From Dimorphilus gyrociliatus (lineage: Eukaryota > Animalia > Annelida): a stretch of DNA of 58,044 nt. The notes under the pieces were generated by a model. The model worked only from the letters and a program-made list of their open reading frames with translations. It was not told where the DNA came from and searched no databases. A program made the position numbers and the translations under genes. Below are positions 1,113 through 26,153 of this stretch, one piece after another (within the stretch, counting starts at the first letter, position 1; the number at the start of each line of letters is the position of its first letter). The stretch is from the NCBI GenBank assembly GCA_904063045.1, contig CAJFCJ010000080.1, forward strand, positions 1 to 58,044. Direction: 5' to 3'.

Positions 1113-1370
1113 TGTACTGCTCTTGCTTGGCAAAATCTATGCGCTTGAAAGTTATAACAATACTGGTTCTACTCGAACCTTTAAACAAATGTTTAAATTA
1201 AAACGGTTTATTCGCAATAATAATACTTAAGCAAGTAACAATATGAGAGTTCAATAGCAGAGTTAGGTTAGGACTTGGGGTTAGGGTTAGGCCACACCCT
1301 AGGCAAGTTAATTAAATTATAACTTGACCAAACCTTTATTGGTAATTAAAGATGAGCCTTCAAGCTGACT
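1113..1370 (-). mobile_element. Internally deleted LTR (family B) with a telomere-like filler at the deletion junction
   Basis: Minus strand matches two non-adjacent parts of the LTRs at 27307-27848 and 41578-42199 and ends in GCAGTACA at 1113. The parts are joined by the tract at 1262-1291. Confidence 0.75.
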
Positions 1371-2469
1371 AATGAAACCTCTCTTTGGCCAATGTTATAG
1401 CATTTTCTTGCATAGATTTTTAAGATGTACATGTATAAGTTGCATAAAATAATAGAGTTCAAGCATGTTAAATATAACCAATGTTGTACACATGTACTAT
1501 GATATCTCAATTATATTCTGTAATTAATTGATGACTATTTTCTATAAAACTTTAAACAAACTACTTTAAAGGGGACAACCAATTTTGACTGTTTATTGAA
1601 AGTTGGTCTTGCAAAATTTACTGTGTCCAATTTTTCCTGCCATTTCCTTTATGGTTTCTCTCTATATTCTGATGTTTAACTTGTTAACTGAAGCAATTCA
1701 TTATTATTAAATATTAATAATTAAGAATGCTGTATGTTTTGAGAGTGTTTTCTGATCTTAAGTGAATGCTTTTTATCTCAACCCAAAAATACCATATATT
1801 CTACTTGCTGTGTTTAAATCAATACAAGAGAACAAAGAAAAGAAACACTCATTGATTAATATTCCATATGTATTCCTGTTGAAAGAATGTTTTTTATATT
1901 TCTGACATTTTAGAAATAAGGAACAAAAAATGAACTGAGGAAGCCCTATGAATTTTTCATAAATTGAATGAAGACATATTCAATCGAAAGATTGATTATT
2001 AATCTTTCTAAACAAAATTTTGAACTTTTATATTAATAATTCATAGAAATATTTCCTATATAACCACATAATGTTTTCTTATACATCTCAAATACGCTTT
2101 AGATTTTCCAAAAAAATAATGAATATTTTAATTTTTCAATTAATAACAATATTTCTTTTGACAATAAGAAATAATGATTGTGCAAGTAAAAATTATGATT
2201 TTTATATTTATTCATATTTCTCCTTATCTTTTATTAATATACAGTTTGCGATTTCTTTCATCAAGAAGATAAACAGTTAGCAACAAGCACATATGTTGTT
2301 ATTTATAATATAGATGATAGAGGAGTAGACTATTGTAAAAAGTTATGCTATTATCTTGAACTTTGCAAGTATGTTTATAGAAAGAGAGAGAGGGAGAGTA
2401 AAATCTACACATTTTTTCCACTTTAGGAGTTTCTATGTTGATAAACAGGATAACAACAAATGTTATCTT

Positions 2470-3023
2470 TCAACTGACCATGCAGGATTAGGAGGAAGTC
2501 AGTTACCTCAAGTCATTGGTTATGATTATTATGAAAAACCAGATGTTTGTGGTAATTAAAAAGTGTTAGATTTTTTTGTAAAATAAAAGTATAAATAATT
2601 TCTTTTTCAGATACTCCACAATTTGGAGACACAAGTAAATAACTAAATGCAATAAAAGCAAAGTACATAAATATATTAATAACATTTCTTTGTTTTTGTC
2701 TGTCTCCTTCCCCTTTAAAGTTACCTATAAAAGTTATCCTGATCAGCTTGGCGGATTTACTTATCATACAGTTTTTAATACAGGTGAAGCTGACTGCAAA
2801 AAACTTTGTAGCATGCTCAGTGATTGCAAGTTAGTTATAAAATATAATAAATGTCTTATAATTTTATCATTTCTTTTTTACAGTACAATTAGTATTGTAA
2901 CTTCAAATCAGATATGTCACATTTTCAAAGCAACCTTTGATGAACTTACAGATCGTCGTCAATCAGTAGGGGATACTACATTTTCAAAAATTGGTGTAAC
3001 AATTGAACCTTCATTGGATCCAG
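2470..3023 (+). CDS. Multi-exon fragment of a PAN/Apple-domain protein (gene ends not defined)
   Basis: C-x3-C-x5-C...C-x-I pattern (DCKKLCSMLSDC...ICHIFK). In-frame 54-nt GT-AG intron at 2830-2883, donor at 3024, further small exons upstream. Confidence 0.45.
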
Positions 3024-3152
3024 GTAAAGAATGTTTGTTTATTTTCAAACCCAAATCAATTAAATAGTTATCTTCATTTAATCATTTAACATATAACAAC
3101 ATGCCACAACATTAAAACTGCATGTATTCCACTTACAAAAAGTGTCAAAAAA

Positions 3153-3217
3153 TTTAGGGTTTGGAAAAGGTTTTTTTTGACTAAATCAAAAAAGAGAAAC
3201 AGAATTCTCAAACTTCA
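3153..3217 (-). repeat. 5'-truncated terminal fragment of the hammerhead-bearing repeat (pLTR family X)
   Basis: Reverse complement matches 7201-7260 and 11012-11073 (TGAAGT.TGAGAATT.TGTTTCTCTTTTTTGATTTAGTCAAAAAAA.CCTT) and ends in CCCTAA. Confidence 0.8.
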
Positions 3218-3670
3218 GGGTTAGGTCTTGGGGTTAGGGTTTTAACGCCCTAGAGTAGCACTCTCACTTTCTCCATGAGTGATACCCTTGGAAGGTTGCG
3301 TTCCACATTGAAGAATAACTATTCTGAATGACGGCAGGTTAATCTCTTAAGAACTGGGACCCTGAATTGTCAATTAGACGTGATACAAGGACCATTCCTC
3401 CGATTACGGGTTAGGGTTATTGTAATGTTGAACTAGATACTAAGATCTAAGTTCTGATGAAAGTTGAATAACTTCCACCAAAGTTTCAAGAGATTCCACA
3501 ATGGTATGGAATGCAAGAGTAAGAACACTCTGTACAAGTAAGACTATCTACAACTGATTGATGAAAAATGTTCAGTTTATGTTTTAATTTTTTGATGGTT
3601 ACTAAGAATAGTTGACCTACCATGGTTTTGTCTTCCCCTTTAGCAAAGACTCATCAGGGTCATTTCAGAA
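3218..3670 (-). mobile_element. PLE-type pseudo-LTR: hammerhead followed by a tail ending CCCTAACCCCAAGACCTAACCC
   Basis: Hammerhead motif at 3614-3661 and telomere-like tail at 3218-3240 on the same strand. Confidence 0.6.
3614..3661 (-). ncRNA. Type I hammerhead ribozyme, degenerate (GAAA to AAAA)
   Basis: GACC-CTGATGA-GTCTT(loop)AAGAC-AAAAC-CATG-GTA-GGTC. Stems I, II and III are intact; G12 is lost by a CpG-type change. Confidence 0.8.
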
Positions 3671-4525
3671 GATAGCTTCACTTACACTACTTTGAAGGGG
3701 AGGTGAGGACCAATTCTGCAATTGTATCCTGCCTTGCATTCTATTTTAGTTGGATGATTGTGTTTTAGAGGATACATGTTTGTAATTTTAATTTTGGAAC
3801 AGATTTTTTTCTTTGTACAATGTTTGAGTTATGTAGAGTGTATAAAGTAAATTCATATTTGTCTGATAAGTCTCATTTCAACAAGGAAGAAATGGCTTTG
3901 TTTAATGAATTAATTTTGAATGGATATGGTTTTTACTTGACAAAGAAACAAAAATTACTTCAAAGAAACACTATTGTACTTTTCTTTGAACATATAAATT
4001 ATAGAAATGTATAACTCACTCTGGTTTTCTTACACATTGTGTTCTGAAAATTTCTTCCTAATGCAGCCTGTAGAAGGTTTTTGGGTTATTTTTGTCTTTG
4101 TTTTGTTGTTTCTTGAGGCTGATTTCTTTTTATGATGGTATTTTTTTTCAACTGATGATATGTGGCTTGTTGTTACCCTTTTATAGGTGGTGGTTATGCA
4201 ATTGACATATATCAAGATATTGCATTTTTTCTTGAAGGTCATGTTTTACTGTGTAAGTCCTTCCTGGGATATGTCTGTTGACCATCTGTTGCTTCTATAT
4301 GGTAAAGTAAATACAAGGGATTTATGATGGACCTACAAATTTAATGAAGTACAATAAATGTATTTTTTTTGGTCTAAACAAACACAACATCAAAATGGAC
4401 TAATATAATGTATGTTTTCTAAAATTGCTTTTTTCTTCTTAGGCTTGATAAAATTATTCATTTGAAATATAAACATGCAAAGAATTAATAATTTTTATGG
4501 TTGAAAGTAACACTTCTGATTAATT

Positions 4526-5587
4526 TTACTGTTGATTTGAAGCTTGGAGAATTGGTCTGTTTAATTTCTTTTTTCTTCCAGTTCTACTTTGTTGTTGTTG
4601 AAAGACTTCTTTACACTTGACCATAATTTCATTGGTAATCAAGTGTTGAACAATATTTCTCAAAGAAGATATCTTTCCAGGCAGAACAGTACCATGAAAA
4701 GGATCTCCTCTTATGATGGTATTAATATCAATAATTTTTGTAAACATGTTGTTCAAGTTTTCAGATTGTGAGGCTGGTTGTTGATGCAGATCACTTTTTT
4801 TTATGTTATATTGCATAAATAATAAGCATTCATTAGTAACTCCAGTGCTTTTATACAAAGCTTTAAAATTATCATCAGCATCATTAATGGTGTTAAAGGG
4901 AATGTGAAGTGCTGTTATATGACTTTTTATTTTCCATTTGGATATAATTTCTTTACAATTTTGAAAGGTTAAGCCAGAAATGTTTATAATGAGAACAGTT
5001 CCAAAAAAGCTGATGTTTCTTTTAACATCTTCTACCTGAATTAAATCTAAGTCACCCAAACTTTCATCACTTAAAAGAAGTAAATTAATTTTGTTGGGAA
5101 ATCCTACAGCTGGTTGTTGTATTTTCATAAGATTGGTAATTTCTTCCTTTCCAAGATTCACTCCAATTTCTGTAAAAGATCTTACCATTTCATTAATATT
5201 TGAATTGTGTTTTCTATTAATTTTCATGTTATTGTTATATTTTAGAATATCATCAGTTTCATTAAGTTGTTGTAAAATCAATTCTACCAATTGTTCCTTG
5301 TTGATACTATTTGATATGCCTTCTTCATTAAGCCACAATTTTTCATTGCAAAATTTTTTAAACTTTAACATTTTTTCTACAACATCTTTCTCATATTGAC
5401 TTGGATCAAAAGTTGGTGGGTGAATTTTATTGTCTCTTTTAAACCTTTGAAGATGATTATAAAATGTTCCAAAATTGAAAAATTGTTCAAAAGAACATTG
5501 CAGGAAATGTTCCATTTCAATTGTTTCATTGATGATTATTTGGTCATTTTCTACTCTTTGAACTTGATTTGGTTGCATGTTTGCCAT
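4526..5587 (-). CDS. 353-aa protein with a C-terminal SGNH/GDSL-hydrolase-like domain
   Basis: Intact ORF. LLLSDESL, IINISGLTF, ALHIPFNTI and DPFH occur in SGNH block I/II/III/V order. A 3' splice acceptor (TTCTTGTATTTAG) lies just upstream of the ATG. Confidence 0.65.
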   Translation of the reverse strand: MANMQPNQVQRVENDQIIINETIEMEHFLQCSFEQFFNFGTFYNHLQRFKRDNKIHPPTFDPSQYEKDVVEKMLKFKKFCNEKLWLNEEGISNSINKEQLVELILQQLNETDDILKYNNNMKINRKHNSNINEMVRSFTEIGVNLGKEEITNLMKIQQPAVGFPNKINLLLLSDESLGDLDLIQVEDVKRNISFFGTVLIINISGLTFQNCKEIISKWKIKSHITALHIPFNTINDADDNFKALYKSTGVTNECLLFMQYNIKKSDLHQQPASQSENLNNMFTKIIDINTIIRGDPFHGTVLPGKISSLRNIVQHLITNEIMVKCKEVFQQQQSRTGRKKKLNRPILQASNQQ

Positions 5588-5754
5588 TTTGGAAGATCTA
5601 AATACAAGAAATTTTTATTGTAAAAGTTTTTGCAATTTTGTAACATAATACAAAAAATAATTTTAAATGAAGAAAGATAGACTACATGAACATAGGCTAC
5701 ACTGAACAGAATTAATCATTCTAAACTAAATCCTTCTAAAAATGTATTCAAAGC

Positions 5755-6603
5755 TTAAATTTTCTTCTTAATCCTACGTCCAGTTCTAATTATTTTCTCC
5801 ACAGCAGTTGTTGGTTGTAAATCATCTGTTTTATCATCCATCTTTCTTTTTGTGGTAAACTTTCTTGTTATTGTATCAAATTTAGGTCTTTTCTCTGGTA
5901 GAGAAGAAGGAGTAGTAGAGTTAGATGTATTATCAGACACATTTTTTCTTTTGTAAAAATGTTTGATTGTAGGTGGTACAGCTTTATTCATTGAATCTTG
6001 GTATTTTTGTGGTGTTTCCTTATCTGATGAACTCTTTTTATCAAATAAAGATGATATATTGTGTTTTTCCTGTTTAAAGTAAACATTGTTATTAATTAAT
6101 TTGAAATAACTACTGACATTGTTTGTAAAAGCAAATATCAGGGGAATATTTTTATATACCAAATAATTTTTTCCAAAATTTCTATAAGTTATTGCTATTT
6201 TTTTTAATAAGGGTCCAATATCATTTCTATATGGAATAACAAATGGTACTCTTGTAAAAACTTGACAACTGGTGTATCTGGCTAAACCAAAGGGATAATA
6301 AAGAATATGTTTCATATTCAAGTGATAAACATATCTATTAATTTCAACAGTTGATATATCTTTTTCAATTTGTTCATAGGGAAATATTGTTATGTTTAAT
6401 TGATTTTCTGCAAAATGTTGATGTTGTATAAAGTTTTCAACAAGCTCATCATTTTTTAATTCTAAATATTTTCTTAATAGAAGGTGTCTTAGTGTTTGGA
6501 ATATGTTGACTTTGGTATATTGTTCTTGTAAGTGGAAATACATATTTTTATTACTACATATTCTTATCTTTTTTTGACATGTTTGTAGAAATTTCTCACA
6601 CAT
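5755..6603 (-). CDS. 282-aa hypothetical protein with a basic, low-complexity C-terminus
   Basis: Long intact intronless ORF, co-oriented with the SGNH-like ORF. No family recognised. Confidence 0.55.
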   Translation of the reverse strand: MCEKFLQTCQKKIRICSNKNMYFHLQEQYTKVNIFQTLRHLLLRKYLELKNDELVENFIQHQHFAENQLNITIFPYEQIEKDISTVEINRYVYHLNMKHILYYPFGLARYTSCQVFTRVPFVIPYRNDIGPLLKKIAITYRNFGKNYLVYKNIPLIFAFTNNVSSYFKLINNNVYFKQEKHNISSLFDKKSSSDKETPQKYQDSMNKAVPPTIKHFYKRKNVSDNTSNSTTPSSLPEKRPKFDTITRKFTTKRKMDDKTDDLQPTTAVEKIIRTGRRIKKKI

Positions 6604-7272
6604 ACATTTAGTTTGCTTATCTGTGCTTTAAAAGTTTACAAATTTTATGTTCCCACATATCTGTTAGCATTATATGGTTTTATTTAAGCTTGATTAGCTT
6701 GTAGCATGTTCCCACAGGCTTTTCCATGTGCCTTATATATATAGCAAATATTTTTTCACAGTGATCATTTATAATTTGGAGATTAGGGAGTCAACATCAC
6801 ATTAAAAGTATCCAGTTAAATAAACATCTTCTACAATTGCTTTCAAAATATACATCCTTCAATAATAAAAATGGTATGTACATGATTCATAATACTGTAT
6901 TATTTTAAGTAGCACTTTTATTATGGTTTATATTGAATAAAAACTGAAGAAGAACCTTCCCTATTGGAAATCTTCAACCTCTCTATAGGTGTAGGTTATT
7001 AGACCCTGATGAGTCCTTGGTTTTGAACATAGAGAGGAGGACGAAACTGTGGTAGGTCGAGTAGGTAGGAAATTATCAAAATTTCAGAAAAAAAATTTTT
7101 TGAAAATTTTTTGAAAAAGTTTTTTATATTGGAAATTGTTTTAAATGTCGATTTTGGTGTGTTTTTTCTTTGACTGCTTCCCAAAAACAATTGGGACTCT
7201 TGAAGTGTGAGAATTTTGTTTCTCTTTTTTGATTTAGTCAAAAAAAACCTTTCTAACCCTAACCCTAACCCT
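6578..7272 (+). repeat. About 700-bp direct repeat (pLTR family X), copy 1, with hammerhead and CCCTAA tail
   Basis: Colinear with 10391-11101; contains the hammerhead at 7002-7058; ends in three CCCTAA-type units at 7253-7272. Confidence 0.85.
7002..7058 (+). ncRNA. Type I hammerhead ribozyme, intact core
   Basis: GACC-CTGATGA-GTCCT(loop)AGGAC-GAAAC-TGTG-GTA-GGTC. Loop II TAGAGAGG can pair with upstream CCTCTCTA (6978-6985). Confidence 0.92.
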
Positions 7273-7274
7273 GG

Positions 7275-7760
7275 GTTAAACTAACTCTGTTATTAATAAT
7301 CATAAAGCTTTCAAAGTTGGTACATACACTAATATTAATGCTCCGATCCTAAATCCTTTTACAGAATTCAATTATCTTGTATGGTTCAAAAGTTATGGCG
7401 CTGCTAAATTCTGTTGCTATTTCTTCTCCATAGGTCTATATAAAATATTCGTTAGGGTTGATAAAAGTTAGTTAATATGTACAATAGAGCTTTGAAATTC
7501 AGTTCATATAGTAATATTGGTACGCCGATTTCAAATCCGTTTACAGAATTCAATTATCTCTTTTGGTTCAAAAGTTATGGCAACTTTATTTTTTCGTCGA
7601 TACTTTGTATTTAGGCCTTAAAAAATATTTGTCATCTGAAAACTAACTTTCTTATTAGTTAGCTTAGAGCTTTGAAACTTGGTATATAGACTAATTTTGG
7701 TATGCCGATCTCAAATCTGCTTACAGAATCCAAATATCAGTACTGTTTTTGAGCTATTTG
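7275..7760 (+). repeat. Degenerate tandem array of about 190-bp units
   Basis: Recurrent TTTACAGAATTCAATTATCT...GGTTCAAAAGTTATGG and AGAGCTTTGAAA motifs at about 190-bp spacing. Confidence 0.7.
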
Positions 7761-8032
7761 CAATTAAAGTGTTTTACATTTTGCTGTTATAATTATTTTT
7801 ATTGTTATGATGTAGTTGTATTAAAAAGGTAATTGTTTAAAATGACTGTTTGTATTTGTATTTTTTTTGTGAATTTTATTTTCTATATTTGAGTTTCAGT
7901 GTGTTTTTTAATAATTACATGATTCTTTTTTAAATCCTACAGTGTAAAATGGACAATACACTGAACAGATGTGATTTTAAAATATATCTTAATCTTTTGA
8001 ATAAGTTTTAAAAAATTTTTCTTCCTTTACAG

Positions 8033-9424
8033 ATTTCTATAGGTGGGTCAACTCCACTGAGAGAGAAATGTATGAAAAACTTGTCATTCAATATTCAAGA
8101 GCCAACTTAATTCATCAACTGAAATATATTTTCAAGGTGCTAAAAAACAGTATGAGCAATGACTATTGTAAAACTTTTAGACCAGGATTGTACAAACAAT
8201 TTCTAAACATGCAATTAGTTGGAGATGAAAAAGTAACTGATGATAAGGAGATGGTTAATGATTTTGAAGAAATGGTACAAGATTTTGAACAAAAGTTTGA
8301 AAATTCCATTAAAAAGAGGTATAAAAAAAGAATAGACTTAAAAGATTATATCTTTCTTGAGCCTCTCTTAAAGTCATGTGAAAGTTGGTTAGAAGTAAAT
8401 AAAATATTGATGTTTTTAAAAGGCAAAATATTTGGCAATGAATCCTGTATAGAAGTTGAGGACTTGTTTAAAAATATACAAGAAATATATCATAAACAAC
8501 CAGAAGAACCACAGCAAGAATTAGAACAGCCAGAGGAAGTTCAAGAAGAAAAAAAAGAAGAAAGAGAACAAGTTGTTAAGCAAAATGAAAATGAATTAGA
8601 ACAACCAGAGGAACAACAGCAACAACAAGAAGCAGCAAGAATCAGAACAAGAGGAACAACCAGAAGAACAATTAAAACCAGAAGAGGAAGAAGAGCAAGA
8701 AGAAGTGTTATACTTTGAAACAAATCATCAGAATGAGCAAGAGGAAGAAATGGAGGTTGAGGAAAATGATATTGATGAAGCTGAATCAGAAAAAATTAAC
8801 ACTAGCAATGAATTATATATTAAACTCAAAGATCACAATGAAGAGTTATTCTTGCTGAGAAATTGCTGCTATCTTACTAAAATAAATTACAGAATGATAA
8901 ATGAAGAAAACCAAAAAGAACAGAAAAATTTTTTAAAATATCTCATTCCAACAATAAGGCAGAATTGTAAGATTATTTTTATTACAAATAATTTCTTTCA
9001 TTTAACTAAGACAGAATTTAATAATATTCTGAAAAATCTTGACATAGAAAATGTTCAATTTGTTGTAATTAGAAAAATATGCTTCAAAAGAATTGAAAAT
9101 GTTTTATGTGATTGGGGGATTAAAAACAAAGTAATAGTATTCCTTTGTAAAAAATACCCCAAAAGTGCTGGATTCATTCCTTGTCAATTTCTTAAGAAAA
9201 TTGAAAACAATTCAAATAAAGTTTTCTTACAAAAGAACTTTCTACCACCAAGAGTTGAAAGTACACTTAGGATTGCAAAATTCCAGTTTATAGACTTCAT
9301 ATTCAAAGATTATAAAAAAGAACAAACTTGTTTATTGAAATTAATGAAGCAATTTTTGAAACAATTATACAGACAACAACTTCATCTTTTTTTTTTATTT
9401 TATGTTTTTAATTCTAGATTATAG
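8033..9424 (+). pseudogene. One roughly 450-aa gene (helical N-terminus, E/Q-rich linker, SGNH-like domain) split by a frameshift near 8630-8640
   Basis: The E/Q-rich reading of ORF 8068-8718 continues in the frame of ORF 8705-9424 from about 8633. The C-terminal IRKICFKRIENVLCDWGIKNKV aligns with ISGLTFQNCKEIISKWKIKSHI of the 4526-5587 protein. Splice acceptor ends at 8032. Confidence 0.6.
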
Positions 9425-9639
9425 ATTATATCACTTTTTTTCTTTTTAATAAAAACAATTTTTTAAAACAAAAATTACTTTGCATTCAATTAAATTTACA
9501 ATTTTGATTCATTGGAATTTAATATAGGCTCATTCTATCAATAATTTTGCTTCAAATTTGATCAAAAATGGTGCAGTAGTTGCTGAGATATGGATTCCTA
9601 TGAATGTTATATATAAACTCTGTTTTGACAATTAAAATA

Positions 9640-10370
9640 TTCGTCATCCAAAAACTAAATTTGTTATTAATTACGATAGAGTTTTGAAATTTTGTACTTA
9701 TACTAATATTAGTATCCTAATCTCACATCTTTTTACATTAATATTTTTTAAATGAGAAATACTTAATAAATGTACCAAATGTCTTTCGAATTGTCCATAT
9801 TTTTTGTGACAATAATTTTATTTCAAATTTAATCAAAAATTGGTGCAGTAGTTGCTAAGATATGATTTTCTTTGAATGTTGTATTTAAACAGGGTTATTA
9901 GTGTATATAAAAAAATATTCGTCAGAAAAAAATTAAACTTGTTAATAGTTAAGATAGAGCTCTAAAATTTTGTACATAATTTAATATTATTATACCAATT
10001 CCAATTCTTTTTACAGAATTGAGTTATCTCTTATGGTTCCAGAGTTATGGCTCCATCAAATTATTTCTCATATATAAACCTATACAAAATATTTGTCATG
10101 GCTGCACTAACTCTGTTGTTAATTAAGATGTATATTTGTAATTCTGTACATAGATTAACATCACTACGCCTATCATAAATCTTTTTACAAAGTTCAATCA
10201 TCTCTTAAGGTTCCAGAGTTTTGGCACCATTAAAATTTACATGTTCTTTCTTTCATAAAAGCCTTTTTTAACATATTTGTCAGGGTAGCACTAACTCTGT
10301 TGTTAATTAAGATAGAGATTTTAGATTCAGTATATAGACTAATACCATAATGCTAATATCAAATTACTAC
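9640..10370 (+). repeat. Degenerate tandem array of about 190-bp units, same family as 7275-7760
   Basis: Repeated AAATATT.GTCA...CTAACTCTGTTGTTAATTAAGAT and GGTTCCAGAGTT.TGG motifs. Confidence 0.7.
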
Positions 10371-10390
10371 AAACTCTTATCTCTATTTAG

Positions 10391-11101: not shown

Positions 11102-11102
11102 G

Positions 11103-13049: not shown

Positions 13050-13413
13050 CACAACAATAATCAACCAATAACTCAGTTCTGGCACTTGGAACCCTAAGAG
13101 CCCTGATAGCCCTGGGAGCCCTAAGGCCAAAATAATAGTTGGTAACAATCCTACTTATATTTGGGTGATATGGAAGCCACAATAACTTTAGTACCTTGGA
13201 TAGCCCTGAAAAACAACAACAGTGTTGAGAAAAAAGAAAAGTGTAAATAGATGGCACTAGTGCAAGGGTGGCCATCTATTGTAATATCAATTAACTACAC
13301 ATGTGTGTGTGTTTTTTATGTATATGCATATATATGGTGTTGGTTTGTATGTACTTAGTAAATTTTTTATGTTTGGTAAAAGGGTATATAAACTCAATTT
13401 TGTTCAAAAATGC

Positions 13414-13454
13414 ATAACCTGATGAAGCCTAGATAATAGGCGAAATATTGTTAT
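13414..13454 (+). ncRNA. Minimal type I hammerhead ribozyme (PLE-type, palindromic stem III region)
   Basis: ATAAC-CTGATGA-A-GCCTA-GATAA-TAGGC-GAAA-TATT-GTTAT. Confidence 0.88.
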
Positions 13455-13515
13455 ATTTCTTTTAATACAGTTTATTCAAAATTTTACTATGAGTCTTGGT
13501 GTTTCCTCTTTCTAA

Positions 13516-13813
13516 CCTGACCAGGGAGAGCCCTGCCTAACATACAATTTTATTTGGAGAAAACACTACCTATTTGGAGAAAACACTACTTATACTTAAT
13601 GCTAACCATATACTAAAACTGGGAGTACAGAGAGCCTTGATACTATATACAAGGGCTCTTACTCATCATTAATATTTCTAAGACCTGACCAGGGGGAACC
13701 CTGCCTAACATACAATTCCATTGGAAAATATTTCCTGGTACTTGGACCTTGAGACTAACCATATCCTAAACCAGGAGTACAGAGAGCCTTGATACTATAC
13801 ACAAGGGCTCTTA
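13516..13813 (+). repeat. Two tandem 168-bp structured units in the PLE 3' UTR
   Basis: Units start at 13516 and 13684. Each has hairpins CAGGG-N4-CCCTG and GAGCCTTG-N10-CAAGGGCTC. Confidence 0.8.
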
Positions 13814-14289
13814 TGTTAATAGTTCTGTGAGTGGCCTAACCCCAACCAAAACAAAACCTAACCCTAACCTAACCCTAACCCAGATACAAATTAGTGAAAC
13901 TTTACAACTAACCCTAACCTAAGATAATGGAACCAACACTTAACTCAGCAGAGAAGAAGGTACAGACTGGACAGACATGGGACCTGTTCTGAACAATTGT
14001 TAAATAATAAAGAATGGGGTAATTTGTGGGGAGACACCTCTCTATGAGAGAACAGATGGTTGACAGTTGGCAGTGAACAAAAGTTCCCCAACAAAAGGTC
14101 CCTTCTGGTTTCCCAATCAACACAAAGACAACCCATTGACAATCATACATGAGCAGTCTAATGTAACCATAACCTCTACCTTCAACCATCTCTCAGTGTA
14201 TTCCTTACATACAGGAACAAGTGTGTCTGATATATATAAGGGGTTGAAAGTTTAACATGGGTCCACAGACCGTATGCTACATAGTACCC

Positions 14290-14940
14290 TAAGGATATAT
14301 ATATCAAAGAGTTAGTTTTGATCCAAAAAAATCAGTGATGTGACAAAAATGTCCCAAATCTGGGCCGTTTAGGAGTTTCGTTATGCGTCATCCTAGACGT
14401 TTCAATTTTGTTGGAGGTGATAGAGCTCGAAAAGAGCTTTTCACTGATATGCTACACGACCATGTAGCTCTTACAGTTCAGGAGTGGCTGAGCTTCGAAA
14501 ATCGAAAATTTTCCGAGTTCGGGTAGAAAAATAAAAATATTTTTTTCTATCTTTCCGACGTAGGGGCAAGCTTGGATTCAAGTTTGAAAGCAATCCGACG
14601 ATTTTGAAAAATTGGCCTTCACTGAGGCTCTGGACTTGTAAAGATTTCGCGAAAATCATTAATTTTATAAGTTCATTGTCATGTTAATTACCTGTAAAAA
14701 CGTTACATTCGCCTGGGTACTTAGAAAGATTTTGGAAAAAATATTTTCCGAAAATATTCTAAGTCCAGCCTAACACAGTGTTAGGTTTTGGACTTAGAAA
14801 AATTTCGACTGAAAAAAGTCGATAAATTTTTCAAAAATATTCTAAGTCCAAATTGGAGGTGAAATCACCCCTTATCTTAGATTCAGTTATATTTCATGGT
14901 GCGGTAATGAATAGGGCTCTGGACCGCCCCATGCAAATAG
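14290..14940. repeat. CpG-rich, DNA-transposon-like segment with an internal palindrome cassette
   Basis: Visibly higher CpG content than the flanks; alternating TTCTAAGTCC/GGACTTAGAA units at 14718-14849. No ORF recognised. Confidence 0.4.
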
Positions 14941-14949
14941 GATTGGCCA

Positions 14950-15300
14950 TATATGTACAGAGGAAGGAACATAGAATTGAATCTAGGTCTTCTTCTGTTA
15001 CATTTTATGAAAAGTGACTTACCTGATTGTTATACCTGCGATTTTTGAAAGGTTACCCTCTAATTACTATAGAACGTAGGGTCGAGATACTGGTAATAGA
15101 GTCTAAGGCTGCCAGTCAGCCATCCTCACCTACCACCGTTAACTTCAAAGCTCCATAGCTCCGCAACCGCTGGGCCGATTTCGTTCAAATTTTGCACAGT
15201 TGCTCAGTTCAATTAGATCTAGCACTGTGTAAAATTTCATAACGATCGGAGCAAGTTGAAATTTCAACTTTCATCAGTGGTCGACTTGCTTTACTGACCA
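14950..15300 (+). repeat. Left arm of an approximately 350-bp diverged inverted repeat
   Basis: Colinear with the reverse complement of 16683-17036; both inner ends stop at GACTTGCTTTACTGACCA. Confidence 0.8.
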
Positions 15301-15364
15301 CCAAATAGGTGATTTGTTGCGAGATAAAGTGTGGGATCAAACCAGTACCTATCCTAAGGTATAG

Positions 15365-15694
15365 TAAGCCTCTCAGAGATCAGTCTGGTGGCAATCTAAC
15401 CAGCCACTTTTCCCCTCTCACTTGATAAAGGAGGAATACCTCCGAAATATTGTGAGTTTTAATCTGGTGACATTTTGTTAGTTGCTAAATACAGGTTCTC
15501 TTCACCCTTGTGGAGAATTTGTAAGTGGTTTTGTTGGAGATACAGTTACAGCTTAGGCTGGGGAATTGCTACTCAAGATAGCAACTCCTCAATAGCTACA
15601 CCAACCCTTAGCCAAAGCTTGGTTATAAGTGTGTGTGCACTTTTGGGATTGCCAGTCTGTACTGATTGTGCTAATCCCTAACCCCAAGACCTAA
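15365..15694 (+). mobile_element. Solo PLE pseudo-LTR (family Y) with degenerate hammerhead and CCCTAACCCCAAGACCTAA tail
   Basis: Colinear with the reverse complement of 43673-44005. Hammerhead 15417-15456 has core TTGATAA instead of CTGANGA, with intact stems. Confidence 0.8.
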
Positions 15695-16110: not shown

Positions 16111-16508
16111 TTTATCAGAATGCAAAACTGTTTCCCTCAGAAAGAAAAGCAATATAAAAATGTCATTTTCTCTCCTGCTCTTATAAAGACCAGCTCAAAA
16201 CTGGTTTAAAACAAGTTCTATTGTAAATATATTGAAAGAATATTGAAATTATTAAAAAGTTCATGAAAGCATTATATTTTGAACTAACCTTAAAGTATTA
16301 TAATCCTAACCTTCATCAATTTACAATAATAGATGTCAGAGTCTGAAAAAACAGAATGCACATTCAATAGATGAACAATGTTGAACTAATATTGCACTAT
16401 GCTTGTATTTTAATTTTTGGCCTACGCCTTTTGTGTCAAGGTTTTTCAATCTATGACTTACTGACAAGCTGAAATTGCACTCACACTGGATATAGGTTTA
16501 GTTAATAA

Positions 16509-16660
16509 GGATCCCACAGAAAATGTCCCCAAATGCATGGCTTAACCCTAACCCTATCCTAGCCCTTATCTTTCCCTGACCTCTTTTTTTACCTGTAACC
16601 CTTATATGGAACCTCCCTAACTACAAATCAATAGTTATTTTACTTCAAAGTATTGCTGAC
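16509..16660. mobile_element. Partial MULE-type MITE, same family as 33116-33319
   Basis: GGATCCCACAGAAAATGTCCCCAAATGCATGG matches the reverse complement of the 33.3-kb terminus. Confidence 0.55.
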
Positions 16661-16682
16661 TACTTTTCGTTTGCCTTGATAA

Positions 16683-17036: not shown

Positions 17037-17046
17037 TACATACATT

Positions 17047-17300
17047 TGGAACTAGAAACTCGTTTTTACTCAATACATATTCTTTGGGCGAAATACTGGT
17101 ATTTTGTTGATTCATTTCCTAACCTAACCCTAAACAAGCAAGTTTAAACAACCAGCTGACAGTTAGAGAACTGAACTGTCTACTGTTGAATTTGTAGGGT
17201 TTATATACTTTTCCAATAGTTAACAGTTCACAGATAAAACTATGCACACAAACAAATGTAATAATTTGGATAAAGGAAAAGTTCAAATATACTTCCATAT
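17047..17300. mobile_element. Two LTR (family A/C/E) fragments in opposite orientation, joined by CCTAACCTAACCCTAA
   Basis: 17047-17117 matches the LTR R/U5 region forward. 17134-17300 matches the adjacent upstream LTR region in reverse (compare 30150-30320). Confidence 0.75.
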
Positions 17301-17307
17301 TTATTAC

Positions 17308-17913
17308 TGTACAACTTTCGTTCTATTCTATTCTTATTCTATACTACTATTATACATAACTTACTACAAACTGATGCAAGGAAATATAATAACATGTGGC
17401 TTAACACAGACCTTCTTGGTCATACTTAAGGTTCATCCTAAGTACCACTTAAGTTTTGGCCACATTATGATTGATGAGCTTGTCTAAGGTTTTGGCCAAA
17501 CTATGATTAATTAACTTTCTCAAGTGGGGAACTTTGTAACATATTGTTCTAAGGACAAACATGAACTAGGTGAGTTCACAGCTGTAAACTGTTGATTGGA
17601 TGCTAGACAATAATCTTCAAGTATATAACTCCTCACTGCTTTACTCCAATCAGCTAACCTCAACATGGGAGGATCAACTGGAACCAATGCCCACTGAGAT
17701 CTTTCTACTTCCTCAACATTGGACACTAGCTTGGTAATTTGTCAACCTACTGTTACCCACTACTTACTCTGCTATTGAACTTTCATATTGTTACTTGCTT
17801 AAGTATTATTTTCAATAAAGCACTTGAATTGAAACACTTTGTTTAAAGGTTTGAGTAGAACCAGTACTGTTATAAGTTACAAACACATAAATTGGCAAGA
17901 CCAAAGCAGTACA
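17308..17913 (+). mobile_element. 5' LTR (family B), TGTACA...AGTACA
   Basis: TG...CA termini, followed by a PBS and gag. Homologous to 27307-27848 and 41578-42199. Confidence 0.9.
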
Positions 17914-17917
17914 AATT

Positions 17918-17936
17918 TGGCACAGTTGACAGGATT
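17918..17936 (+). promoter_or_regulatory. Primer-binding site, tRNA-Ser-like
   Basis: TGGCACAGTTGACAGGATT, 4 nt after the LTR. The other copy reads TGGTGCAGTCGACAGGATT. Both resemble the TGGCGCAGTCG..AGGAT tRNA-Ser PBS of 17.6/297-type elements. Confidence 0.75.
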
Positions 17937-17977
17937 TTCTAATTTGGTTTATTTATACTTTTGGAAGAAAAGGAAAT

Positions 17978-19599
17978 ATGGTAGAAGGAGGTAATGGAAA
18001 TACCACTGGAGCAGTCACAGACACTAATCCTTCTACCCCAGCAACTCCAACAATCACAATTCAACCAGCAGGGATTTCAGAAAGGCAGCAGAGACTAATT
18101 GAGGACTATGATAGATTGGTATATGAAATGAAAAGAAATAATATTACAATTCCTCCAGGCTCTGAAAATGTAACACCTCACCCAGTACAAAATCCCAATG
18201 TAGATATTACAACCCTAATTCAAACATTGAGAGCTGCTTGGGACTGCCCTCAAAGAGCTATCCTCAGGTTATATGATGGTAGCAAGGAATGTTCAAAATT
18301 CAAGGAAAACTTTTATCAAGCATGCAATGCTTAAGGTTGGGTTGGTGAACATAGTATGAAAGCAAATCTTTTAGATTACTTAACTGGCCCAGCAGTTGGT
18401 CAACACTCTGCATCCAAGATGTCAAACATTGGCAGAATTATATGATGCTGCTAAATAAGCAGAAATTTCATTAAAGTTAAACCAGAGAAAATCAATCACA
18501 ATGGTGTCTAAGTTGGAAACAAAGGAACAAAAAAAGACCAAAGTGATTAACAAAGATGCTTCAACAGAAACCCCAAGTTTTTGGAATAGACAGCATCCAC
18601 CTGACTACAGGAAGGCTGCTAAAGAAAAGTGGCAAAGCCAGAAATTCCAAAAGTATGCACCCCCTATGAATAGGTATTATAAGAAAAATCAACAAGCCAA
18701 GTTGATCCTGAAGGAGGAACCTAAGCTACAAAAATTGGAAACACTGGAAAATGACAGTTCATCAGAAAATGATGAAGTACAAGATATTCTCTGTTTTTCT
18801 GATAGTTAAGAATCTATATGTCAGTTTTTACAAAGTAAACAAACTGAGAGAAATTCTTCAACTTTTATTGGACAATTTGAAACTAAAACTGGCTTCAAAT
18901 TTGATGCCTTAATAGACTCTGGTAGTGACAGGTCTTTTATTTCAAAAACAGTATTAAAACAAATTCAAGGGAAAGCATCCTTTCCAGAGCCAACTGTGAA
19001 AAATGCTAGAGATGCTTCAGGCAACAGCATTGAGATATATGGCGAAATTATTTTAAAACTACACATCAATGGGAAAATTATTAAGCAAAGCTTCCTAATC
19101 AACAAAACCATAACACAAAAGTGTATTATAGGTTGTGATTTTCTACAACAGACTGGAGCAACTCTTGACTTTTACAAAGGACAGATTATACTGCAGTCAA
19201 TTACAGAAAAGAATTATCCACTTGAAACTCAACATTTATCCTTCAAAGGACTTCACCCAGTTCCTTCCATCACAAAGAAAAGTGAAAGTCAAATACATAG
19301 TCTTCAGACAAATATTGAACAGGAAAATTCAGAGCTGGAACTAAAAGTCACAAAAACTCTGGAAAATATCAAGATACTATTGCAGAAGACAGATTTGACA
19401 TTGGCAATCCAGATGCTCCACCCCTGGAAATTACTTTACAACCAGGTTCAACCCCATATAGACAAAAGCCTTATAGAATGCCTCCTCAAAAACAAGAAGA
19501 GTGCAAGCAACAAATAGCTGAATTAGTAAAAAGCAAAGTTATTCAACCAAGCAAGAGTAACTGGGCTTCACCAATTGTTTTTGTAAGAAAGAAGGAAGG
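17978..19599 (+). pseudogene. gag: Defective gag-protease-(start of RT) of Gypsy family B
   Basis: ORFs 17978-18334, 18501-18809 and 18996-19517; FDALIDSGS protease motif; PYRMP...SNWASPIVFVRKKEG RT start; stops and frameshifts. Confidence 0.85.
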
Positions 19600-20087
19600 T
19601 GTGCACTTAGAAGTAGCTCACGCCCAGACTATTTTAGGATAAAAGGCAATTGGGACAATTATTTATTACAAATTGTAAACATTCAATTATATAAGTTGTT
19701 AAAATAATAGAATCATCTATTAAATGGGATTAATGGTTTAAATATGACGAACTTAGAATGGTGAAGGTTGCACAGCTGTTATTTACCACAGGAAAAACAA
19801 CAATTAAAACAATAGAATTGACTATTAGAAGGGCTTAACCATTCAAATATGACGAACTTAGAATGGTGAAGGTCGCACAGCTGTTGTTTACTACAAGAAA
19901 ACAACAACAAATGTTTGCAAACCTGTTAAGGAAATTATTGAAAAGGTTTAGCAGCTGTTTTATCAAATGCTTAATTATGGACTGGCATATGTTCATTATT
20001 TCTTTAAGAATTCTTGTTACATTTGAAAGATGAAAGTGATATCCCTATCACTTCCATCTCAGCTATTGTTTAGTAAATATATATTTA
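19600..20087 (+). repeat. Repeat D copy 1 (starts TGTGCACTTAG; internal repeat of about 103 bp; followed by a CCCTAA tract)
   Basis: Direct repeat of 21645-21938; same first 11 nt as the LTR at 26154. Confidence 0.8.
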
Positions 20088-20105
20088 CCTAACCCTAACC
20101 CTAAC

Positions 20106-21644
20106 AAATCTTCTATAATATCCACAAAATGCTACAAAACTTAATAAAGTATTTGCAAACATTGGTAATTCAGCATCCTTTATCTTTTGAATCTTTTCTG
20201 GATCAGTTTCAATGCCATTTTGTGTAATTCTATGACCAAGAAATTGTACTGATTCTTGTAGAAATGCACATTTGCTTAATTTAATTCTGAAATCTTTTTC
20301 CTTGATTCTTTCCATTAACTTTTCAAGAGCAATGAAATGTTCTTCCAAAGTTTTTGTAAAAACAATGATGTCATCCATATAATTAATACAAAAGTTTTCT
20401 AATCCATTTATGACAAAATTTGCCATAATATAACTAAAGTGTGAAGGTGCATTTGCCAAAACCAAAAGGCATTCGATTAAATTCAAATAGACCAAATGGT
20501 GTAATAAAAGCTGTTTTCTCTTTATCTTCTTCTTTGATGGGAATGTGGTGAAATGCACTTGTTAAATCCAAGATGGAAAAGTATTTATGTCCTCCTCCAA
20601 GTTTGTCAAATAAATCTTCTTGGTGTGGGATTGGATAACAATTCTTTTTTGAATGCTTGTTGAGTTTTCTGTAATCTACACACATTCTCAATGTTCCTTC
20701 TTTCTTTTTAACAAAGACAATAGGTGAAGCCCATTGGCTTTTACTTGCTCTAATCAATCCATTTTCCAATAGTCCATTCAGTTGCTCTCTACATTCCTGC
20801 TGCTTGTTTGGTGGCAATCTGTATGGTCTTTGTTTAAAAGGTTTTACTTCATCCAACAATTCAATTGCCATAGGTGGAACATCAGGTGAGCCAATATCAG
20901 TTTGATTTGTAGCAATAATATCTTCATAATTCTTAATGATTTCTTTTAATTCTTCCCTGCTCTTTTCAATGTTACCTTCAGACACACTGGAATAATTGTT
21001 AATTTCCATAGTGTTTATTGCAAAACTGTCTCCACTATGATTTGACAAAAGTTCACAATCTATAACTCTGTTAAAGTCCAATTCTTCCAACTCTTCTATG
21101 TCAGGAAGTGGTGGGGATTCTTCATCTTTTTTAACTTCAATAATTATTCCATCGTCCAACTCAATGTGCTGGGATTTCATTTCTGTTGCTGTATCTTCCT
21201 CAGATGTAGTACCAGTCTCCTCTTCTGAATCCACAGAATCTGATATGTCAGGCTGGTCATCATGTTTTTGCAAATATTGTCCAATCAGTCCAACAGTTAG
21301 TTTGTTAGGTTTTCCTTGGTTTCTTTTATTTGTCTGATTGTTTTGTCTTTTTTGTAGAAAAGTTTTAACAGGCTCTCCTTTTCTTATAAAAAATGGTAGT
21401 GAAACTTGTTTAGTTGCAAAGTTAATTAATGCACCAGATTCTCTTAGGAAGTCACATCTCAGAATTATTGCCATATCCAATTTTTCCATTATAATGAAGT
21501 CTTGTTCCATTATTTGTCCAGCAAATTGTATATTAAGTTTTGCTTTACCTTTAGTTTTCAGGGCATTTCCATCAGCCAAAGTTATTATTGGTAATGCAGT
21601 GGTTTCTTTTGTTGCACATTTTTGATCCAATAATTTAATTTCTT
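20106..21644 (-). pseudogene. pol: Inverted Gypsy protease-linker-RT segment
   Basis: ADGNALKTKG, CDFL, PFKQRPYRLP, WASPIVFVKKK, LRMCVDYRKLN, LDLTSAFHHI, FGLFEFNRMPFG, then a frameshift to YMDDII, FLGHRI and GYYRRFV. Confidence 0.92.
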
Positions 21645-21938
21645 TGTGCACTTAGAAGTAGCTCACACCCAGACTATTTTAGGATAAAAGAATCATCTAT
21701 TAAATGGGATTAATGGTTTAAATATGATGAACTTAGAATGGTGAAGGTTGCACAGCTGTTATTTACCACAGGAAAAACAACAACAATAAAAAACAATAGA
21801 ATTGACTATTAGAAGGGCTTAACCATTCAAATATGATGAACTTAGAATGGTGAAGGTTGCACAGCTGTTGTTTACTACAGGAAAACAACAACAAATGTTT
21901 GCAAACCTGTTAAGGAAATTATTGAAAAGTTTAGCAGC
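21645..21938 (+). repeat. Repeat D copy 2 (internal deletion; followed by CCCTAA tract 21938-21963)
   Basis: Direct repeat of 19600-19957. Confidence 0.8.
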
Positions 21939-21963
21939 TAACCCTAACCTAACCCTAACCCTA

Positions 21964-26139: not shown

Positions 26140-26153
26140 AAGGGTGGGATATC

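Follow-up and report, generated by a model that had tools for sequence, protein, structure and literature searches.

The window, that is, the whole 58,044-nt stretch of Dimorphilus gyrociliatus DNA that was analysed, carries a chain of non-coding units (X, Y and Z), a unit or satellite S and one Penelope-like element (PLE), bordered by short telomere-like tracts, and also LTR retrotransposons of the gypsy family (here G1) and of the Dingle family that are interrupted by similar tracts. The chain is contig-internal and runs in two opposed orientations, with no proven chromosome end there. Its features are:

3141-3153, plus strand: short tract TTTAGGGTTTGG, a 'primer end' common to five paralogous blocks
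3154-3217, minus strand: 3'-terminal 64 nt of unit Y, 5'-truncated
3218-3240, plus strand: T3, GGG plus the 19-mer tail of unit Z
3241-3407, minus strand: 3' fragment of unit Z, 5'-truncated, then a tract (3406-3418), then S
6550-7252, plus strand: 3' region of a Y unit, with a hammerhead-like motif (6986-7049); a C-strand tract (7253-7275) comes next
10363-11077, plus strand: 3' region of a second Y unit, with a hammerhead-like motif (10791-10863)
11068-11101, minus strand: T11, tail or cap past the Y 3' end, adjoining the PLE 5' end
11102-13856, plus strand: PLE, with a reverse transcriptase (RT) and GIY-YIG ORF at 11220-13049
13835-13856: constant tail of the PLE, reading TTTTGTTTTGGTTGGGGTTAGG on the G strand
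13857-15694, plus strand: unit X, 1,838 bp, no long ORF
13857-13882: constant C-strand tract at the 5' end of X
15676-15694: 19-mer tail at the 3' end of X
43676-43694, plus strand: second X tail (19-mer), with X body at 43695-44002

Telomere-like tracts were found at all seven positions named in the original prediction (1262-1291, 3218-3240, 11068-11101, 15671-15694, 17118-17133, 20088-20105 and 21938-21963), and comparison with other genomic copies showed that homology to a repeat family stops at each of them. Sequences matching (TTAGGG)2 with at most one mismatch numbered 16 in the window (0.21 expected), and the first 22 kb held 12 of the 18 tracts of at least 11 nt. Comparable tracts that had not been named lie at 3141-3153, 3406-3418, 7253-7275, 13835-13856, 13857-13882 and 43676-43694. 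The tract at 16546-16556 is the interior of a dispersed 135-bp repeat. Genome-wide, the 13-mer GGTTAGGGTTAGG occurred 1,617 times (2 in the control) and was concentrated toward contig ends, the interiors being nearly free of it (large contigs with matches listed: C1, C3, C4 and C5). The seven named tracts split into two classes: class A comprises 3218-3240, 11068-11101 and 15671-15694, together with at least six of the tracts not named before, and class B comprises 1262-1291, 17118-17133, 20088-20105 and 21938-21963.

Class A tracts are 3' tails of retro-units, constant and templated; the preceding 5'-truncated unit may or may not bear a short cap. The non-canonical 19-mer TTAGG[T/A]CTTGGGGTTAGGG was counted 66 times in the genome and not once in the control. 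It is irregular and common to unit X, a diverged X-like family and unit Z, and is therefore templated rather than made by telomerase. Its A-variant precedes X-type bodies on contigs C23 and C63. Six copies of unit X are full-length (96-99% identity), and at least 25 further copies all begin at the tail and break off at differing positions (5' truncations at 57, 83, 109, 148 and up to 1467 nt). Past the truncation, approximately 10 of 14 truncated copies continue into a tract and then into the 3' end of Y, X or the PLE, with differing tracts at differing truncation points. The upstream flank of the X tail at 43676 belongs to family K and is shared with C59.

Unit Y ends at an identical base in more than 45 genomic copies, after which the length of the tract differs among copies; the piece at 3154-3217 is an inverted repeat of 7201-7252 and 11012-11075 (96-97%). 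The motif in the second Y unit matched Rfam Hammerhead_3 at 29.5 bits (E=0.012), under the gathering score, and no hammerhead-like motif was detected in unit X. The tail of T3 with its Z body was present at five or more other loci, each with a different 5' truncation point. On C3 and C14, S begins at the same start after telomere tracts, and it is probably a retro-unit family with a telomere-complementary 3' tail of its own. The PLE ORF (Pfam matches RVT_1 and GIY-YIG) is the only RT seen in the chain and keeps its endonuclease domain. Its Atlas neighbours are endonuclease-positive (EN+) PLEs of animals, relatives of 70% identity sit in tandem arrays, and C5 carries the same PLE tail and 3' end.

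The five paralogous blocks share the same ...TTTAGGGTTTGG and then differ in the pieces of Y or Z that come next: 64 nt of Y, 18 nt of Y, Z from an internal point, or 16 nt of Z followed by a tract and Y. Retro-units also adjoin true terminal TTAGGG arrays at the start of C27 and the end of C51 (in one example, 21 nt of Y and then a 416-nt terminal array), as well as arrays on C23 beside a scaffold gap, one of which is directly adjoined by a short piece of the PLE 3' end.

Class B tracts lie inside LTR retrotransposons of which other copies are free of them. The features concerned are:

1090-1508, minus strand: solo LTR of gypsy G1, carrying the patch 1263-1291
1263-1291, plus strand: T1, 26-29-nt telomere-like filler in place of ~286 bp of LTR
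17044-17118, plus strand: inverted Dingle LTR segment of 70 nt that normally lies past the breakpoint
17118-17133, minus strand: T7, native ...CTTGTTTAG then GGTTAGGTTAGG, with a 4-nt in-register overlap
17130-17308, minus strand: Dingle LTR segment A, first 178 nt, cut at TTTAG
17308-19599, plus strand: gypsy G1, 5' portion with LTR, gag and protease; it breaks off at 19599 and is fused there to the 5' end of repeat W
19600-20087, plus strand: repeat W', with the constant 5' end TGTGCAC..., cut by T6 at an internal position
20088-20105, minus strand: T6, on the sense-strand 3' end of the Dingle RT fragment
20106-21645, minus strand: Dingle fragment P, in inverted orientation with respect to the other parts of the element; it corresponds to positions 8125-9943 of the C60 copy
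21645-21939, plus strand: second copy of repeat W, cut by T5 at a different internal position
21938-21963, minus strand: T5, on the antisense-strand 3' end of the Dingle remainder, with a 2-nt overlap (TA)
21962-26160, plus strand: Dingle fragment R (C60-copy position 10311 onward: RNase H, integrase, env)

These tracts appear to mark three local events. The G1 solo LTR was aligned to three other copies in the window; more than 40 genomic LTR copies match 1110-1263 and 1290-1490 with ~286 bp between the two, which points to a 286-bp deletion at T1. The filler contains the A-variant of the 19-mer, a form of the retro-unit tail, and is not purely a product of telomerase. The T1 junction recurs at 99-100% identity on C254, C53 (three times) and C70, giving six near-identical copies; that of T3 is likewise found on other contigs. 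At T7, the event would be an inversion of the 70 bp that border the breakpoint; more than 30 canonical Dingle LTRs carry this segment directly after segment A on the same strand (base-level comparison with C70; the inversion was also recovered by the automatic flank test). The junction occurs once in the assembly. The third event would be the splitting of a Dingle element with loss of 368 bp (element coordinates) between fragments P and R. More than 35 Dingle copies continue where the window switches to repeats at T6, and in both pieces the tract sits on whichever 3' end a single break would uncover. P and R have diverged from other copies to a similar degree, and the two pieces could derive from different copies. 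No constant unit 3' end was found past T1, T5, T6 or T7.

Approximately eight dispersed copies of W share the same 5' end and carry no telomere tracts, and those on C71 and C84 extend past the end point seen in the window. Both T5 and T6 run into this same repeat, which a simple break model does not predict.

Microhomology, which had been expected as a general feature, was weak, at 0-4 nt, and not significantly above chance overall: the in-register overlap averaged 1.5 nt, compared with 1.33 nt at random sites (P=0.30; 12 junctions judged against other copies), and measured 2, 2, 2-4 and 4 nt at the four LTR-element junctions. One of the two examples given for it, CTTGTTTAG followed by GGTTAG, was correct. 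The other, AGATTTGTT followed by AGGG, agrees with those Dingle copies that read ...GATTTGTTAAAG, whereas others read ...GATTCATC. The placement of the tracts at transposon breakpoints was borne out insofar as all seven lie at family boundaries, but the three class A sites are constant retro-unit 3' tails and not arbitrary breakpoints. Nor is every tract a fresh extension of a broken end, because several are constant, inherited unit parts. Some tracts are not independent events, since they were inherited inside composite units or segmental duplications. That tracts might be constant parts of element consensi thus holds for several of them and fails for T1, T5, T6 and T7, which canonical copies lack.

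We propose, with a probability of about 0.6, that two processes left these tracts: chain building, which would account for most of them, and local break repair at 1262, 17118, 20088 and 21938. That 3' ends served as primers, which enzyme acted (telomerase, the PLE RT, or the PLE endonuclease through a nick) and in what order the events took place are matters of our reading of the architecture, the copy comparisons and the distribution of the tracts. In chain building, X, Y, Z, probably S, and the PLE would each carry a templated telomere-complementary 3' tail, and the tailed RNA would be copied onto a DNA 3' end finishing in TTAGGG-type repeats, so that the G-rich strand reads older sequence, tract and then an antisense unit beginning at its own tail. 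Early stops of copying would give 5' truncation, the new 3' end would gain a few more repeats or the tail of the next unit, and repeated rounds would build head-to-tail chains. Subtelomere-type blocks would later have been duplicated and inverted into contig-internal positions. Sites 3218, 11068 and 15671 would have arisen in this way. The proposal is supported by the constant 3' tails with variable 5' truncation, the chaining of truncated X copies into other units, the single primer end shared by paralogs, the units adjoining terminal arrays, the clustering of the 13-mer near contig ends and the match to Athena/Terminons discussed below.

In local break repair, a double-strand break within an LTR retrotransposon would expose 3' ends. 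Onto 2-4 nt already in register, these would gain telomere-like sequence of 12-29 nt, and the extended ends would be rejoined to DNA of the same element. The outcomes would be the 286-bp deletion, the inversion of the adjoining 70 bp and the split Dingle with 368 bp lost and one piece inverted. This is supported by the 286 bp that canonical LTRs have where T1 has filler, by the 70 nt distal to T7 that sit inverted directly past the tract, by the Dingle ends at T5/T6 that lie 368 bp apart with tracts on break-exposed 3' ends, and by the lack of a constant unit 3' end after T1, T5, T6 or T7. The two interpretations offered originally thus each explain a share: layered former chromosome ends, if read as telomere-primed addition of tailed retro-units, suit the majority of the window's tracts, three of the seven named sites among them, and RNA-templated break patching suits the other four, as local repair with telomere-like filler.

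Since the chain's only RT keeps an endonuclease, priming may instead have taken place at an enzyme-made nick in a telomere-like tract. In the manner of TRAS and SART of silkworm, the PLE GIY-YIG enzyme would then nick TTAGGG-like tracts anywhere, and tailed RNAs would anneal and be copied in, with no free end or break needed at chain junctions. We consider this unlikely, although the ORF resembles those of ordinary EN+ animal PLEs, which prefer microsatellite targets (PMC8557442), the chains are contig-internal in both orientations and tracts border every unit on both sides. The static architecture could fit nick priming and free-end priming alike. However, nicking leaves T1, T5, T6 and T7 unexplained, as other copies of these LTR elements lack a target tract, and erosion followed by re-extension accounts no less well for the paralogs that share one end and carry units truncated at 18 and 64 nt with no remainder downstream. 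It is quite unlikely that all seven sites are layered former chromosome ends, with terminal deletions into Dingle and gypsy healed by telomerase, gypsy and W captured, and no interstitial repair. Published Terminon arrays do capture host genes between units (PMC6431247), T5, T6 and T7 read TTAGGG on the same strand as the chain at 7253-15694, and W comes after both T5 and T6. A healed terminal deletion should have lost its distal side, and T1 and T7 count against it for that reason: the same LTR resumes 286 bp further in the same orientation at T1, and at T7 the tract is followed, in inverted orientation, by the distal 70 nt of that very LTR, whose end coincides with the breakpoint. Moreover, W is not a tailed unit; it has two different internal starts and no tracts elsewhere.

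Passive spread of the tracts as constant transposon parts, by transposition and segmental duplication and unrelated to ends or breaks, is very improbable, and the evidence at most sites already contradicts it. Constancy across copies does hold for the 19-mer tail, the X 5' tract, the K-X junction and the tract of the 135-bp repeat, and T1 is present in six near-identical copies; against this stand the varying tract length past the Y end, the differing tracts of truncated X copies, the canonical LTR and Dingle copies without T1, T5, T6 and T7, and the units adjoining real terminal arrays. Only a minimal probability was assigned to the single-copy junctions at 17118, 20088 and 21938 being chimeras of a repeat-rich PacBio assembly. 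Each occurs once in an assembly made from early PacBio reads with haplotype merging and scaffolding (PMC7854359), and the Logan contigs listed end at or before these tracts, none being shown to bridge them, in tables unable to show bridging at repeats. Yet a telomere-like tract of 16-26 nt placed precisely at the joint is not something a misjoin would make, and neither is an exact inverted copy of the 70 nt beside it; the comparable junctions T1 and T3 also recur on independent contigs.

Class B tracts resemble the interstitial telomeric sequences of mammals, which are inserted at sites of double-strand-break repair and include TERC-ITS (Nergadze et al. 2007, PMC2246262; PMC8537989; PMC7215372). 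Both consist of a short telomere-like insert where 'empty' copies are continuous, flanking DNA is frequently lost, and extra non-telomeric letters betray an RNA template. Here, however, the 'empty' state is deduced from paralogous transposon copies instead of orthologues, the extra letters of T1 match the tail of a retro-unit family and not telomerase RNA, and two of the three events include inversion of adjoining DNA. Morrish et al. reportedly described endonuclease-independent L1 insertion at breaks and dysfunctional telomeres. There too, the RT is primed by a free 3' end of DNA, whether at a break or at an uncapped end, as is presumed here, and short, truncated insertions go along with deletions at the target. 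The elements belong to another class, and at T1 only the tail (~19-29 nt) was copied.

The TRAS/SART elements of Bombyx are telomere-repeat-specific non-LTR retrotransposons that lie in fixed orientation in telomeric repeats and bring their own endonuclease; they have an RT of the LINE class, an AP-type endonuclease and poly(A) rather than telomere-complementary tails. Accumulation of retroelements in telomeric repeats in a fixed orientation and a self-encoded endonuclease are common to both systems, target cleavage by the PLE endonuclease being putative here, whereas the RT class differs and the tails in the window are telomere-complementary. The architecture of class A matches what has been described (PMC6431247, PMC8557442) for Athena/Terminons, the endonuclease-deficient Penelope-like elements of bdelloid rotifers (Gladyshev & Arkhipova 2007; Arkhipova et al. 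2017; reviewed in PMC6431247), although the repeats here are TTAGGG and the PLE is endonuclease-positive. Differences concern the host (an annelid), the telomere unit (TTAGGG, compared with TGTGGG in rotifers), the C-terminal GIY-YIG endonuclease kept by the chain's only RT, tails that are non-canonical yet conserved (the 19-mer and the PLE tail), and the position of the hammerhead-like motif, which in Y lies ~200 nt upstream of the tail and not immediately beside it, with none detected in X. In both systems, units end at the 3' side in short telomeric repeats in reverse complement, a hammerhead-like motif lies in the 3' region (here of unit Y), short telomeric stretches truncate copies at the 5' end, units form head-to-tail or interspersed arrays that have caught other DNA between them, and attachment is beside true terminal arrays.

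Telomere-like tracts were found at all seven coordinates named in the original prediction, and comparison with other genomic copies placed each of them at a point where repeat-family homology stops. Comparable tracts that had gone unlisted were located at 3141-3153, 3406-3418, 7253-7275, 13835-13882 and 43676-43694. We explain these sites by two processes (joint probability about 0.6): chain junctions between retro-units with telomere-complementary 3' tails, and repair scars within LTR retrotransposons. Layered former chromosome ends and the patching of breaks had been offered as alternative readings; both were retained, each at different sites, with a layered chain at the unit junctions and break patching at the LTR scars. 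The features referred to are as follows.

Tracts and repeat units (forward-strand coordinates)
1263-1291: tract T1, in the LTR (1090-1508) of a gypsy family, G1
3218-3240: tract T3, with unit Z to its right
11068-11101: tract T11
11102-13856: Penelope-like element (PLE)
13857-15694: unit X, sense + strand, body behind a 19-mer tail
15671-15694: tract in the X tail
17118-17133: tract T7, in an LTR of the gypsy element Dingle
19600-20087 and 21645-21939: dispersed repeat W
20088-20105: tract T6
21938-21963: tract T5

The assembly comprises 77.9 Mb in 349 contigs; contig C80 has 79,947 bases, the first 58,044 forming the window. Pairs of telomere units, one mismatch allowed, occurred 16 times in the window (0.21 expected), and the 13-mer GGTTAGGGTTAGG occurred 1,617 times genome-wide, compared with 2 occurrences of the reversed control. 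On the large contigs with matches listed, the 13-mer clustered near the ends, at 9-13 and 48-50 kb on C3 and at 68-482 kb and 4.42-4.47 Mb (of 4.55 Mb) on C5, and contig interiors were almost devoid of it among the matches listed (two on C1, one on C4). One source of telomere-like words is unrelated to breaks: the tract at 16546-16556 is internal to a dispersed repeat of ~135 bp with more than 35 copies. This repeat (window 16508-16645) is also carried by large contigs, and TAGGGTTAGGG is a constant internal part of it.

TTAGGG was taken as the telomere unit from the perfect or near-perfect arrays that terminate C27 at its start and C51 at its end, and from further arrays adjoining scaffold gaps on C5, C22, C23 and C59. 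On the last four contigs the arrays stand directly beside runs of N, and at C23:753000-762000 two of them face each other across a gap; scaffolding apparently fused telomere-ended contigs, and some 'interstitial' arrays may be scaffolding artefacts. Irregular alternation of TTAGG and TTAGGG was considered as a discriminator between telomerase and reverse transcriptase (RT) products and was rejected, because the true terminal arrays of the assembly have the same irregularity. The last 4,573 bases of C53 (104705-109277) were 99.98% identical to window positions 1-4573, so the left edge of the window is no chromosome end. The end of C53 and the start of C80 are probably an overlap or haplotype copies, and C254 ends within the same block.

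An irregular 19-mer, TTAGG[T/A]CTTGGGGTTAGGG, was common to four tracts and was found 66 times in the genome and 0 times in the control; on the G-rich strand it is followed at most loci by a constant body. For unit X, six full-length copies (96-99% identity) and at least 25 truncated copies were recovered, the latter all starting at the tail and stopping at 174, 214, 284, 380 and further points up to 1467 nt. Where the 3' end is fixed and 5' truncation is graded in this way, the pattern is the hallmark of reverse transcription that takes a DNA 3' end as its primer. About 10 of the 14 distinct truncated X copies at the loci examined run into a tract, behind which stands a 3' end belonging to Y, X or the PLE. 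A diverged X-like family begins with the 19-mer as well, and so does unit Z, which has at least five other copies, each truncated at a different point. Common to the X, X-like and Z bodies, the 19-mer was thus inherited from unit templates and is not a telomerase product. The 3' end of unit Y falls at one base in more than 45 copies and then gives way to tracts of differing lengths; CCCTAA-type tracts, constant or variable, follow the 3' ends of Y, X, Z and the PLE.

Five paralogous blocks holding sites 1262 and 3218 have their sequence in common up to TTTAGGGTTTGG and then diverge, and the downstream remainder of the cut units is absent from these five blocks.

Contents of the paralogous blocks 3' of TTTAGGGTTTGG
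(i) 64 nt of Y, then Z
(ii) 18 nt of Y, a tract, another unit, a tract, then a long Y
(iii) Z from an internal point
(iv) 16 nt of Z, a tract, then Y

The sites 3218-3240, 11068-11101 and 15671-15694 are assigned to such chain junctions. Real ends follow the same order of parts: toward the contig end, the G-rich strand of C27 has the X tail with 38 nt of X, then four telomere units, one Y unit, a tract of 52 nt, a 21-nt piece of Y and a terminal array of 416 nt. Retro-units adjoin the terminal arrays of C27 (start) and C51 (end), as well as arrays on C23; the window's own chain is internal to contig C80.

A tail-only 19-mer on C26 was considered as a break patch and was rejected: its upstream flank belongs to family K, a sequence found ahead of the X tail in composites, and because of this flank the locus was read as a truncated composite. 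At C40:83801-84718 and C42:31834-32752, two X-like 19-mer tails face each other ~900 bp apart with identical upstream flanks; these inverted head-to-head pairs are reminiscent of inverted structures reported for PLE insertions.

The open reading frame at 11220-13049 matched RVT_1 (29.4 bits, cut-off 29.6) and, C-terminal to the RT, GIY-YIG (28.3 bits) in Pfam, and its nearest Atlas clusters were animal PLEs with HTH_animal, RVT_1 and GIY-YIG. From these domain matches and neighbours, its predicted product is a Penelope-like RT. Fusion of the endonuclease to the RT is the canonical layout of EN+ PLEs. The PLE (11102-13856) has its own constant tail, which recurs on C5, and a short piece of its 3' end adjoins an array on C23. 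Relatives of the reading frame, with ~70% DNA identity, form tandem arrays on C162, C254, C107 and C41 at a spacing of ~4.1-5.3 kb. Unit Y contains two hammerhead-like matches to Hammerhead_3, of 29.5 bits at 10791-10863 and of 22.4 bits at 6986-7049, both below the gathering score of 48.5 and ~200 nt upstream of the tail; at gathering thresholds Rfam gave no match in the window, and relaxed searches gave no hammerhead in X or the 3' region of the PLE. Two reading frames inside or beside Y units, 4526-6603 (- strand) and 8068-9424 (+ strand), had no Pfam match at E<=0.01.

A core, TTGGGGTTAGG, in which a TTGGGG variant unit stands beside a canonical unit, is common to the PLE tail (13835-13856), the X/Z tail (15676-15687) and the filler of T1 (1275-1291). 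The T1 filler with its next four bases (GGTTAGG, then CCAC) is also similar to the way the PLE 3' end begins (GGTTAGG, then CCACTCAC).

In the proposed mechanism for the chains, a telomere-complementary RNA tail would pair with a TTAGGG-type DNA 3' end and would then be copied, and early stops in copying would be capped by more repeats or by the next unit. By analogy with TRAS and SART, the primer could instead be a nick made by the enzyme inside a telomere-like tract, not a free end. Nick priming is conceivable because the PLE RT here retains its endonuclease domain, and we regard it as unlikely. Priming on a free DNA 3' end is the reading followed here for the chain junctions.

The remaining sites lie in LTR retrotransposons. 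The genome paper, on a compact 73.8-Mb PacBio assembly, names Dingle, a gypsy element whose env is herpesvirus gB-like, as the main transposon and mentions neither Penelope-like elements nor telomeres (PMC7854359); within the window, the gypsy element at 20.1-26.2 kb matches the Dingle layout in part, with a long reading frame after the integrase. T1 lies within a solo LTR of a gypsy element: a telomere-like filler of 26-29 nt here takes the place of ~286 bp present in more than 40 other copies. Both flanks belong to one LTR in the same orientation, with a 2-nt overlap at each of the two joints. The junction is present in six near-identical block copies and therefore predates the block duplication. 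At 17118-17133 a Dingle LTR is cut after a native TTTAG and 12 letters are added; right after them come, inverted and ending at the breakpoint, 70 nt that normally lie downstream in more than 30 other LTRs. The inserts are missing from 'empty' copies (more than 40 LTR copies for T1, more than 30 for T7), these being paralogues, not orthologues. In an automatic flank test of 98 tracts in 329 kb, both flanks belonged convincingly to one element only at T1, its paralogues and T7. At 17305-17308 the outer end of the G1 LTR adjoins the first base of the Dingle LTR, two LTR termini standing head to head.

Tracts T6 and T5 lie on two Dingle pieces that end at 9943 and 10311 (coordinates of the C60 copy), with 368 bp missing between them and the left piece inverted. 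T6 is at the 3' end of the sense strand and T5 at the 3' end of the antisense strand, positions that would correspond to the two 3' ends exposed by a single break. The two pieces are similarly diverged from other copies and so may derive from one source copy, which this similarity allows and does not prove. Repeat W follows both tracts, entered at two different internal positions, and is tract-free elsewhere; at this locus each W 5' end adjoins a gypsy fragment. An origin of T5 and T6 from W as a tailed retro-unit was rejected, since W copies elsewhere lack tracts and extend beyond both end points. W (19699-19956, 21684-21939) begins TGTGCAC, has an internal tandem duplication of ~105 nt and might represent the solo LTR of an additional family. 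Among the Logan contigs listed for T5, T6 and T7, none bridges a tract and the repeat at 21935-21966 is skipped, which speaks neither for nor against the junctions; these three single-copy junctions are therefore taken from the assembly alone.

Microhomology, also claimed at the breakpoints, was borne out weakly at best. In-register overlaps at the four scar sites, measured against other copies, were 2, 2, 2-4 and 4 nt. Overlaps of 4 nt occurred at 2-3 of 12 junctions, depending on the paralogue chosen as native, and were somewhat commoner than the 2% expected per site; the mean over the 12 junctions (1.5 nt) was not significantly above that at random positions (1.33 nt, P=0.30). The T6 overlap is copy-dependent: there is none against the C60 and C35 Dingle copies, and other copies read ...TTTGTTAAAG, so that up to 4 nt may be native.

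The scars suggest that the same machinery as in the chains, or telomerase, occasionally acts at internal breaks. Within the T1 filler lies the 19-mer's A-variant, found elsewhere, on C23 and C63, at the head of X-type bodies; a retro-unit tail variant in the filler argues for a non-telomerase template, and with a unit-specific tail in this one scar the template becomes identifiable by sequence alone. A broader proposal, which we consider doubtful, is that tailed RNAs of the PLE-associated units, copied by their RT, are used both at chromosome ends and as patches on ordinary germline double-strand breaks, leaving tail signatures specific to a unit, the 19-mer among them, and promoting local inversions. 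If true, this would be a retroelement-templated route of break repair, distinct from telomerase-made interstitial repeats. Telomere-attaching PLEs are the closest relatives of telomerase, and a Terminon-like chain here would offer a compact genome for studying how such an RT chooses DNA 3' ends.

For the scars, the closest precedent is, by analogy, the insertion of telomeric repeats during mammalian break repair, in which flanking DNA is lost in half of the events, in-register overlaps measure 1-5 nt, and additional letters copied from telomerase RNA give away the template (PMC2246262). Unlike those inserts, the T1 scar has extra letters that point to a retro-unit tail, not to telomerase RNA. 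For the chains, the mechanism proposed here is the same as the published Athena/Terminon model, in which copies are cut short at the 5' end by brief telomeric stretches and lie in head-to-tail or interspersed arrays with other, captured genes in between (PMC6431247, PMC8557442). Shared with these elements are the reverse-complement telomeric repeats at the 3' end, the tract-truncated head-to-tail arrays and, for units on other contigs, the location at or near termini. One difference is the endonuclease, which the RT proteins of Athena and Terminons lack and which is fused, as GIY-YIG, to the PLE RT here; some Terminons have separate GIY-YIG-like reading frames, and, as far as PMC8557442 and PMC6431247 go, telomere-attaching PLEs are well described only in endonuclease-deficient lineages. 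A Terminon-like chain in a TTAGGG animal, with an endonuclease-bearing RT and with units whose non-canonical tails are conserved, would broaden the host range and the layout known for such elements. Systems of this kind are known; new are the host and the variant, which combines TTAGGG repeats, a PLE with an endonuclease, non-canonical tails that are conserved, and a repair scar bearing such a tail.
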